DNA of 63,250 bases, the filler included, from Olpidium bornovanus S191 (Eukaryota; Fungi; Olpidiomycota), in the NCBI GenBank assembly GCA_017911155.1. It is 29 parts of 29 records of this genome, joined end to end, with 100 filler letters (N's around TTAATTAATTAA, not from the genome) between each part and the next. Parts side by side here need not be neighbours in the genome. Positions count along the whole stretch, not along the records: positions 3,121 to 5,677 come from JAEFCI010004128.1; 28 more parts are not named here. One strand, given 5' to 3'. Shown here piece by piece: positions 2,536 through 5,677 of this stretch. A program made the position numbers and the translations under genes. How positions within the stretch are numbered: the stretch's first letter is position 1; each line of letters begins with the position of its first letter. The notes under the pieces were generated by a model. It saw only the letters and a list, made by a program, of their open reading frames with translations. It was not told where the DNA came from and ran no database searches.

Positions 2536-3916
2536 GCGTTGGATGCTTTGTCAGATTGCGCCTGAACTGCGCCGGCTGCAGACGTCAAGAAACGGTTAGC
2601 CCGTCAGACGTCAAAAAAAATGAAAAAAGCAAAGCAAAAAGTATTAAGGATAAAACTGGCGCTATCTCTGAGAGAGCGAAGCTCACCGATGTGTAACAAA
2701 TTCAAGATTCCACCTGGCCAATTCAGGATGTTCAATAATGCCTACAACTGGTTGTACCATTTCTCAGTCAATAATACCCCAGTTCATTTATTTGACCTCA
2801 ATGGAGCCTTTCAAATCTCAGCATTCTCTGCTGCGTTGCCTACGTGCACATTTTAAAAATATCGCCGACTGCCGAAATCGTTGTCATTGCTGGCTACGGC
2901 GACATCAGCAAAGAATGTCGGCCCCGGGGTACTCGCAGTAACTCTGTCGTTTAGAGAGTAGATGTCACATTTGACAAACCTCTTTTCGATTCACCTCCTC
3001 TTGTCCATTTTCCAAGCATGNNNNNNNNNNNNNNNNNNNNNNNNNNNNNNNNNNNNNNNNNNNNTTAATTAATTAANNNNNNNNNNNNNNNNNNNNNNNN
3101 NNNNNNNNNNNNNNNNNNNNGGCATGTCCGACAGCTTGCTGGCCGTCTGCACCTCTCACCCAAGCTCCGTGAATAGCCCCCATCTCCTGTCTTCTGTTGC
3201 GCGCCTTTAAGCTTTGTTTCACAAGTCCGTTACATCGTTGGACCCCCACCCCCTCCCGACCCCGCTTTACGGACGTCTTTGGCGCGCCGGACAATCCAAT
3301 TTTGTCGAGTAGCTTGATGCGGTTGCGCGAACGTATCTCAAGGACATAATCACGTAGGGCCGTCAATGGGACGGGGTCGGCTCGGGCCGGGCCCTGTCCA
3401 CCGCTCGACTCACCCCGGCCTTGTCGGGGGTCTGGCCCGATCCAACCCATCTGATGAACGCTTTTGACCCGGCCTGACCCCCCCCCCTCCATATGCAAGT
3501 GGCTTCTGATGCCCGACCCGTTTCCCACACACCTCCGGCCCGCTCGAGCTATTCTCATTGCTGGCCTGATCATCGAACACGGTTTGTATTGCCAGGAACG
3601 ACATAAAAAAGTATACATAAAGAGCCGGGATATTTTAAATATAATCCTGCGGTGCCATTTGGGCCCATAACGGCCCTTCGAAGGACAACGCGGGTTATCT
3701 CGTCCTTTTCTGGTTTTTTGTCTGTGTGTGTGTTTTTTTTTGTTTTTTTCTTTTCTTTTCCGGGCGGGTGGGCCAGACAGCGTGTTCGACAGGGAAAAAA
3801 AAAAAAAAAAAAAAAAAAAAAGGAGAGAGAGCGGCTTCCGACGCCTCTTTCTTTCCCCCCTTCGTTTTTTCCCTTTCCCAGCCCGCTTCCTTCCGGCAGA
3901 AAAAAAAAAGAAGAAA

Positions 3917-4088
3917 ATGTTTCCGGCTCAAGCGGACCCGTCCCGCGCGCCGGCCCCCGCCGGGGCCGACGTCGTCGGGCGCCGCCGGTTGAAAAAACTG
4001 GAGAGCGAGGTGAGCTGGGGGCATCGGCGTGTGTCCCCGCGGGCGGGCGTTCTGTGCTCTCCCTCGCTCCCCCTTTCTGCTCGCCCTC

Positions 4089-4119
<31 letters not shown>

Positions 4120-4147
4120 TTCTCTCACTCTCTCTCTCTTTCTCTCA

Positions 4148-4179
<32 letters not shown>

Positions 4180-4889
4180 ACCTCCCGTTCCCCCTCCCTG
4201 CCCCGTTTGTCCAGCACCCAACCGTTTGCGTGTCTGGCGCGGCGCTCATCGCTACCCGGCCTCTCGCCCGTTGTCTCCACCCCCCTCCCCCGCCGACGCC
4301 CTCACGCAACGGTTTCGCCCGCCGGTCCAGCACAAGACCCTGGCCGTCCTGTCTGCCGAACTCGCCAGCCTGAAGCCGGGCAGCGTAAGGCGCCGAGGAG
4401 GAAACTTTCGAGGGCCCGTTTCGCGCCCCTTCCCTCCCGCCCCCCGGTCTTCACGGGACTTACGCGAGCGGCAAACCGGGGGAAAAAACCCCCCCCCCGT
4501 TTTTTGGCCGTTGTCTTTTGTCGTCCGTCGTCTGTTTTTTTTTTTATTGGTCGCAGGCGATCTACCGGCAGAAAACGGGTTCGAACGTGCTCTTCTTGGT
4601 GCAGGGCGCCGACGGGAAAAACGGGGTCGTCTCCGAGGTGGAAGGTCTGCAATTTATTTTTTTTTTGTGGTCTTGTGCGGGGGGAGCGGGAAAGCGATGT
4701 TTTTTTTGCTGGAGAACGCCGAAGGGGAAGAACGGGCCGCGCCGGCCCGCCGCGCGACGAAAAGAAAAGAATTTTTTTTCTTTTCCAACGGAAGAGCGTG
4801 TTTCGCTTTTGTGTTTACGCGCAGCGCGCCAGGCCCGGCTTTCGGAGGAGATAAAAGCCGCGAGAGGCGCTTTGAGAACAGCCGCGTGA
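3917..4889 (+). CDS. ASDURF: ASDURF-like beta-prefoldin-type small protein, complete, 99 aa; join(3917..4009,4331..4384,4557..4644,4825..4889)
   Basis: Four exons with GT-AG borders sum to 300 nt: MFPAQADPSRAPAPAGADVVGRRRLKKLESE|HKTLAVLSAELASLKPGS|AIYRQKTGSNVLFLVQGADGKNGVVSEVE|ARQARLSEEIKAARGALRTAA*. Helix, beta-hairpin, helix layout. LASLKPGSAIYRQKTGSNVLFL resembles human ASDURF [22 protein letters not shown] (recalled from memory). Confidence 0.75.
4085..4180. repeat. (CT)n microsatellite inside intron 1 of the ASDURF-like gene
   Basis: Long, slightly interrupted ctctct tract. Confidence 0.9.
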
Positions 4890-5642
4890 GAGGAAGGGGG
4901 AAGGGGGAAGGGGGTGGGGCCTGGCGAAAGGGCCGCGCTGCCCGTGACTGTTCGACGTGAATTTGTCCCGGATAAGGAGGACATGGTTCCCCCCCCCCCC
5001 TTTCTTCCCAAGGCAAAATACTCGCGCCCCGGCCCCCCCGCGCAAATGATCTGCGACATTCGCGAAGACGGGGTTCTGCTGGATCCGCGGGACTCACGGT
5101 ATTACGCGGGATTCGCGGTCAGCTGACCTTTTTCCACTTCTTTTTTTTTGCTGCTGCAAAAAACTTTTTATTACTTTACGGCAGGCAGCGTAATTATTTT
5201 TTTTCTTTCTATTTTGATGGAGTGGGTGCGACGGCGGGCCGCCGGCGCACGGCCGCTGCGGCGAGCACCAAAGTGCGGGGCACAGCTGTGGCGTGTAGAC
5301 GGTGTGTGTACGCGACGCCCGCCGGGCGTACCATGCATGCAGCATTTGCGGGTCTCCCGGTTTTGGAGCCAGGCTCGGAAACATCCCGAATGTTTTACCC
5401 AGACGCCGGCCGGTAGGGAGGGAGGGTGGGTGTTGTCGGAACCGTCCGCCGTATAGGGCCCCCCCCCCCCCCCCCCTTTGGGGAAAGAGGAAAAGGTTTG
5501 GCGTTTCGGAGTTTTGGCGGGGGTTTTTGTTCTCTCTCTCTCCGCAGGAGCCGTGTCGCGCGCGGTGTCGGGAACCCGGAAAAAAAAAAGAAACAGAAGG
5601 CCCCCGGTCCGACACCCCGCCCGCCGCCCGCCCCCCGAACCG

Positions 5643-5677
<35 letters not shown>

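Follow-up and report, generated by a model that had tools for sequence, protein, structure and literature searches.

Human ASDURF is encoded in an upstream open reading frame (uORF) of ASNSD1, an arrangement that is conserved in vertebrates and does not define the protein family. The ASDURF-ASNSD1 pair is among the bicistronic transcripts covered by a study that also analyzed how such pairs of proteins arose in evolution. The Arabidopsis ASDURF is the product of a stand-alone gene, At1g49245 ('Prefoldin chaperone subunit family protein'), which was recovered with UXT and URI by AP-MS and co-purifies with UXT, URI, PFD2, PFD6, and PDRG1. According to reviews, yeast has only Bud27/URI among the prefoldin-like proteins and no prefoldin-like (PFDL) complex, and we found no report in the literature searched that links ASDURF to any fungus.

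Here we describe a locus at positions 3917-4889 of the window, the whole stretch of 63,250 nucleotides (filler included) analyzed from the zoosporic fungus Olpidium bornovanus. Positions 3121-5677 are one entire 2557-bp contig of the O. bornovanus MAG, and the assignment of this contig to Olpidium is that of the depositors' metagenome binning. According to the genome paper, the assembly was obtained from zoospores that were not axenic, by metagenome binning, and was annotated by MAKER with Trinity RNA-seq evidence. We think it fairly likely that the locus is a stand-alone, three-intron gene and that the product of its main mRNA is a beta-type prefoldin-like microprotein of 99 residues, most plausibly the Olpidium orthologue of ASDURF.

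The Olpidium protein resembles human ASDURF and its Pfam family, ASNSD1-SEP (PF21975), in size (99 aa against a 96-position model), in the predicted beta-prefoldin order of helix, hairpin, and helix, and in the position on the profile at which its hairpin region aligns. It differs from human ASDURF in having its own three-intron, monocistronic gene rather than a uORF of ASNSD1, and from the PF21975 family in a score below the family cut-off, in helices that do not align, and in a Gly-rich stretch, GADGKNG, inserted after the hairpin. With At1g49245 it shares a stand-alone gene and a small ASDURF-type protein, a likeness drawn from published descriptions, whereas the lineage is fungal instead of plant; small plant clusters with mixed Prefoldin_2 and ASNSD1-SEP labels are among the nearest neighbors of the Olpidium protein in the ESM Atlas. 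The predicted order of secondary structure is also that of PFDN1/2/4/6 (yeast Gim6/4/3/1) and PDRG1, and the Atlas model has its best structural neighbor in an archaeal prefoldin-beta cluster. Unlike those PF01920 proteins, however, the Olpidium protein is shorter, has no PF01920 match, and matches no solved chain named as a prefoldin. Its hairpin further reads as a motif of the YRQ...SN..FL kind, like that of human ASDURF, and we treat this resemblance as a lead rather than a test.

Gene structure and splicing

We translated the locus exon by exon and mapped onto it the Logan contigs from four public runs (X1-X4), in which the junctions carry a 2-base ambiguity and the kinds of run are partly guessed. 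The initial annotation had proposed four exons with GT-AG borders that join into a complete 99-aa protein. Translation bore this out, with exons at 3917-4009, 4331-4384, 4557-4644, and 4825-4889 on the + strand that sum to 300 nt, or 99 codons and a stop. The features of the locus, with contig depths in brackets, are as follows.

3900-3916, + strand: 5' UTR, at least over the reach of the contigs, an A/G-rich leader; the X2 and X3 contigs both start at 3900
3917-4009, + strand: exon 1, coding, 31 aa (MFPAQ...KKLESE)
4010-4330, + strand: intron 1, 321 nt, GT..AG; junction 4009/4331 in X2 (depth 55.6) and X1 (16.4)
4215-4330, + strand: alternative 5' extension of exon 2, from acceptor 4214 used with donor 4010; X4 (27.1) and X3 (4.4)
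4331-4384, + strand: exon 2, 18 aa, HKTLAVLSAELASLKPGS, which carries predicted helix 1 on into the loop before the hairpin
4385-4556, + strand: intron 2, 172 nt, GT..AG; junction in X1, X2, and X3, with an unspliced contig also in X1
4557-4644, + strand: exon 3, 29 aa and 1 nt (AIYRQ...SEVE), with the predicted beta-hairpin IYRQKTGSNVLFLV and a Gly-rich loop
4645-4824, + strand: intron 3, 180 nt, GT..AG; junction in X2, retained form in X1
4825-4889, + strand: exon 4, coding, 2 nt and 20 aa, RQARLSEEIKAARGALRTAA, then TGA; predicted C-terminal helix 2
4890-5189, + strand: 3' UTR, some 260-300 nt long judging by contig ends at 5148, 5186, and 5189, although contigs cannot fix transcript ends

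The three donors read gag/GTGAGC, agc/GTAAGG, and aag/GTCTGC, and CAG ends each of the three acceptors. The ATG at 3917 is the first AUG 3' of the contig starts at 3900 and has an A at -3. From the structure models, the N-terminus encoded by exon 1 is probably disordered, with helix 1 starting near residue 17, and exon 3 together with exon 2 makes up the region that matches PF21975. Intron 3 keeps the reading frame and contains no stop codon (the ORF at 4518-4889 spans it), such that its retention would add 60 residues without truncating the protein. Three nucleotides past the stop codon, the 3' UTR contains a GGAAGGG tandem repeat of 3.3 copies (4892-4914).

A single 576-nt contig from X2, a run of 2012, aligns at a depth of 55.6 and with 0 mismatches to 3900-4007, 4329-4384, 4557-4642, and 4823-5148. 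After allowing for the 2-base ambiguity, these blocks correspond to the junctions 4009/4331, 4384/4557, and 4644/4825, all GT..AG on the + strand, and one contig thus holds all three of the splice junctions that the four-exon structure predicts. In X1, a separate study of 2025, we found the junctions 4009/4331 and 4384/4557, along with unspliced contigs over introns 2 and 3. The junction 4384/4557 was present in X3 as well; this run was guessed to be a DNA run, yet its intron-less, exon-only contigs are what RNA gives. The deepest contig, that of X2, represents the productive isoform. We conclude that the 99-aa gene is genuinely spliced into mRNA. This mRNA extends over at least 3900-5148, and contigs from the other runs reach 5186-5189; across this reach (~3900-5189) the transcript is monocistronic, and reading its spliced contig from the first AUG gives this ORF and no other. 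Depth was absent over 3379-3894 and past ~5270 in all four runs, holes which in themselves prove nothing.

Joining donor 4010 to the upstream acceptor (junction 4009/4215) shifts the reading into the frame of the ORF at 4029-4373, where it ends prematurely at the stop codon 4371-4373, and the resulting isoform is probably non-productive. Use of acceptor 4214 could reflect either regulated unproductive splicing or splice-site noise. The two acceptors of intron 1 have a 9-mer in common, GTCCAG/CAC, which lies within 4205-4217 for the upstream alternative and within 4321-4333 for the main site. One further contig from X3 (depth 11.5) joins 4008 to 4324, which keeps the frame and adds Val-Gln ahead of exon 2. 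The skipped segment of 315 nt lacks canonical ends (it has GG..CC, or GT..CG if shifted by 1 base), and the junction may be due to an AG that arose by strain difference or to an assembly artefact.

Comparison with the public gene model

GenBank has a gene model at this locus, P0001, annotated as hypothetical protein BJ554DRAFT_6708 with 144 aa, which maps to 3917-4027, 4217-4384, 4557-4643, and 4827-4886. Its start, its stop, and its introns 2 and 3 are identical to those of the 99-aa model. The first intron differs (4029-4214 in P0001) and leads to the insertion of 45 proline-rich residues (P0001:32-76). A donor at 4029 was absent from all RNA contigs of the four runs; acceptor 4214 is real in RNA, but it is paired with donor 4010 and not with 4029. 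Because donor 4029 occurs in no contig and acceptor 4214 is joined to 4010, we consider the 99-aa model better than that of GenBank, and the public model is corrected by the removal of 45 spurious residues. The locus had been put forward as a hidden gene. It was in fact already annotated, and what stands of that description is that the annotation gives the gene a wrong model and no name.

Family assignment by sequence

The sequence searches covered exons 2-4 (equal to P0001:77-144, correctly joined) and the 144-aa GenBank model. With exons 2-4, Pfam gave a single match at E<=10, ASNSD1-SEP (PF21975), which scored 15.7 bits (E 0.016). The gathering score of this family is 27 bits, and the match lies below it for both exons 2-4 and the 144-aa model (15.7-16.2 against 27 bits). 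Four trimmed versions of the query held the match at 15.8-16.2 bits (E 0.011-0.015), and it was lost once exon 2 was removed. The alignment runs from query residue 6 to 36 (P0001 82-112, residues 37-67 of the 99-aa protein) against positions 36-66 of the 96 in the profile. What aligns is the last portion of helix 1 together with the beta-hairpin, not a generic coiled coil; it covers only ~30 residues, with neither helix aligned. With residues 37-67 set against profile positions 36-66, one place apart, and 99 aa against 96 positions, both the place of the match and the total length agree with the ASDURF family.

Other searches by sequence returned no relative. Neither P0001 nor any of five sub-ranges of it matched Prefoldin_2 (PF01920) at E<=10, and NCBIfam, its archaeal prefoldin model included, gave no match. 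A phmmer search against all PDB chains yielded no prefoldin-named chain at E<=10, only coiled-coil and TrmI noise, and Pfam searches with single exons and with the stop-free ORF that runs through exon 3, intron 3, and exon 4 found nothing. When exons 2-4 were searched exhaustively with phmmer in a set of 1.84 billion representatives, no ASDURF or prefoldin appeared at E<=0.001; apart from the Olpidium protein's own entry, the search returned only two repeat proteins, P0002 (4429 aa) and P0003 (873 aa). Residues ~12-40 of the query match nine repeated stretches of P0002 and six of P0003, and one of the two proteins has 22 VWA domains. We take these to be summed chance matches to the hairpin, for which the whole-protein E-values (9e-16 and 5e-8 for P0002 and P0003) are misleadingly low. 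A word search with the ORF through exon 3, intron 3, and exon 4 found only the gene's own GenBank record, and one with exons 2-4 gave no candidate. We rejected a 23-residue match in a metagenome as chance, on a GC-rich contig crowded with long overlapping ORFs.

Because phmmer and the word searches found no relative, the family signal rests on the Pfam profile and the ESM Atlas. Judged from sequence, the resemblance to ASDURF appears weak but position-matched, and it is the sole family resemblance of this protein. The initial annotation had proposed ASDURF as its identity and had reserved doubt for a best match to a canonical prefoldin (Gim1-6) or to nothing. The sole family match was PF21975, not a canonical prefoldin, which upholds the proposal in part; the part that did not hold up so well is its firmness, given 16 against 27 bits and the lack of relatives in these searches.

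Predicted fold

AlphaFold2 (AF2) models predict, in P0001 numbering, helices at 17-31, 80-88, and 121-143, strands at 95-101 and 104-110, and a short third strand. When P0001:77-144 is modelled and numbered on its own, the strands fall at 19-25 and 28-34 and the helix at 45-67. The predicted order of helix, beta-hairpin, and helix fits a beta-prefoldin and agrees with the layout claimed earlier from the sequence. The AF2 models, which were built from single sequences, show a compact sheet and helix, and are of mediocre to low confidence, with a pLDDT of 72 for exons 2-4 and 53 for the 144-aa model.

In the ESM Atlas, the three nearest embedding clusters are labelled Prefoldin_2 and/or ASNSD1-SEP, at scores of 0.84-0.86 and with 184-193 shared features; by the tool's own calibration, scores below 0.9 are leads only. 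These three clusters are small and eukaryotic (plants, oomycetes, and chordates), with proteins of 66-85 aa. Of the ten best named matches, nine belong to the family or clan of the top one. The Atlas model of residues 77-144 gave, again as leads, a TM of 0.84 to an archaeal prefoldin-beta cluster, 0.76 to a plant Prefoldin/ASNSD1-SEP cluster, and 0.71 to a chordate ASNSD1-SEP cluster. A second Atlas search without PF01920 added nothing.

Fold searches with the AF2 models (Foldseek against the PDB, Atlas shape search, and VIA-align wide) found no prefoldin and returned chemokine-, sigma-r4-, and COMM-domain-like matches with weak scores. We consider these searches uninformative because the models come from single sequences, the query is truncated or interrupted by the insert, and the protein would be an obligate subunit of a complex.

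Alternative explanations

Two other readings of the protein deserve weight, and we regard each as unlikely. The protein could be a small beta-prefoldin-like protein that is not the orthologue of ASDURF, for example a shortened, fast-evolving paralogue of PFD1/2/4/6 or PDRG1 with a convergent hairpin. The mixed Prefoldin_2 and ASNSD1-SEP labels of its Atlas neighbors, the archaeal prefoldin-beta cluster as top structural neighbor (TM 0.84), and the sub-threshold score of the ASDURF HMM would all suit such a paralogue. Canonical beta subunits, however, normally match PF01920 strongly and exceed 99 aa, whereas here PF01920 was unmatched at any trimming, no prefoldin-named PDB chain was found at E<=10, and the one family that did match is ASDURF, in co-linear position. 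We assign a similarly low probability to the protein being an unrelated, lineage-specific small protein that has arrived at the order helix-hairpin-helix and at a 16-bit ASDURF match by chance. An E of 0.016 is not negligible, 1.84 billion representatives contained no relative, the AF2 models look unlike prefoldin, and the Atlas scores are below 0.9. Set against these points is the convergence of three partly independent lines (the HMM, the language-model embedding, and the Atlas structure model) on one small family, together with the agreement of match position and protein length and the fact that the match lies in the hairpin and not in a low-information coiled coil.

There is also a very slim chance that the transcript is real and its ORF yields no functional protein, the RNA being non-coding or regulated by NMD. 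The frame-shifting alternative acceptor and the introns retained in some runs point in that direction, but the productive isoform is the deepest, the removal of three introns keeps one frame, the first AUG has an A at -3, and the product has a family resemblance. We favor the ASDURF orthologue over these other readings.

Proposed role and significance

As an ASDURF orthologue, the Olpidium protein would, by analogy with humans and Arabidopsis, be the small beta subunit of a heterohexameric prefoldin-like complex, placing its beta-hairpin in the double beta-barrel and pairing its two helices into one of the coiled-coil tentacles. The hexamer would comprise URI1/Bud27 and UXT as alpha subunits and PFD2, PFD6, PDRG1, and ASDURF as beta subunits. 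By the same analogy, this complex may dock on R2TP/R2T-HSP90 and act with the R2TP/HSP90 co-chaperone in the assembly of multi-subunit complexes. At the level of the RNA, the second acceptor of intron 1 would divert some transcripts into the frame-shifted, probably non-productive isoform.

The initial annotation had gone on to suggest that the uORF arrangement of metazoans is derived. This already follows from the stand-alone At1g49245 and is not new, because a stand-alone ASDURF in Arabidopsis was established. The novelty is a candidate ASDURF in Fungi. If this is correct, the fungal ancestor had the smallest PFDL subunit, which was lost later, and fungi become the third major lineage with ASDURF, after animals and plants, with a stand-alone gene in both of the non-animal lineages. 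The gain is incremental, because the plant PFDL complex already implies an ancient origin. The locus is also an example of intron-rich microprotein genes that are mis-modelled or left without a name.

The initial annotation had also pointed to a PFDL module fuller than that of yeasts and to flagellum loss. In a further reading, the module was lost with the flagellum in later fungal lineages, which would tie the PFDL part of the PAQosome to the assembly of axonemal dynein. Arabidopsis is not known to have flagella. Because it nonetheless has ASDURF and a PFDL complex, the proposed link to flagellum and dynein is unsupported; the plant case argues against a strict connection of flagellum and PFDL, and we consider joint loss in fungi quite improbable.

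Surroundings of the gene

The uORF-of-ASNSD1 arrangement is absent at the Olpidium locus within the contig. As stated at the outset by the initial annotation, the 790 bp downstream, within the contig, contain no ASNSD1-like ORF, and Pfam searches on the ORFs in this region (4914-5123, 5148-5453, and 5302-5676 on the + strand, 5097-5645 and 4565-5059 on the - strand) gave no meaningful match and placed none of them in a family. The same holds for the upstream ORF at 3121-3618 on the - strand, for which Pfam likewise returned no meaningful match.

At the left end, a 319-nt contig from X1 and a 337-nt contig from X2 span 3121-3296 and 3121-3306, respectively, and extend ~145-150 nt past the edge. 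Because they overrun the left edge at 3121, a second transcribed gene abuts the end of the contig; candidates for it are a + strand ORF that ends at 3210 and a - strand ORF that starts near 3185.

The contig is dense in simple repeats. A (CT)47 microsatellite lies inside intron 1 (4086-4179), C18 is found at 5459-5476, and A32 forms the contig end (5646-5677). An A27 run and T-rich runs (3795-3821, 3733-3759) lie ~100-180 bp 5' of the start codon. These simple repeats are probably the reason why the assembly breaks here and why the run contigs end where the repeats lie.
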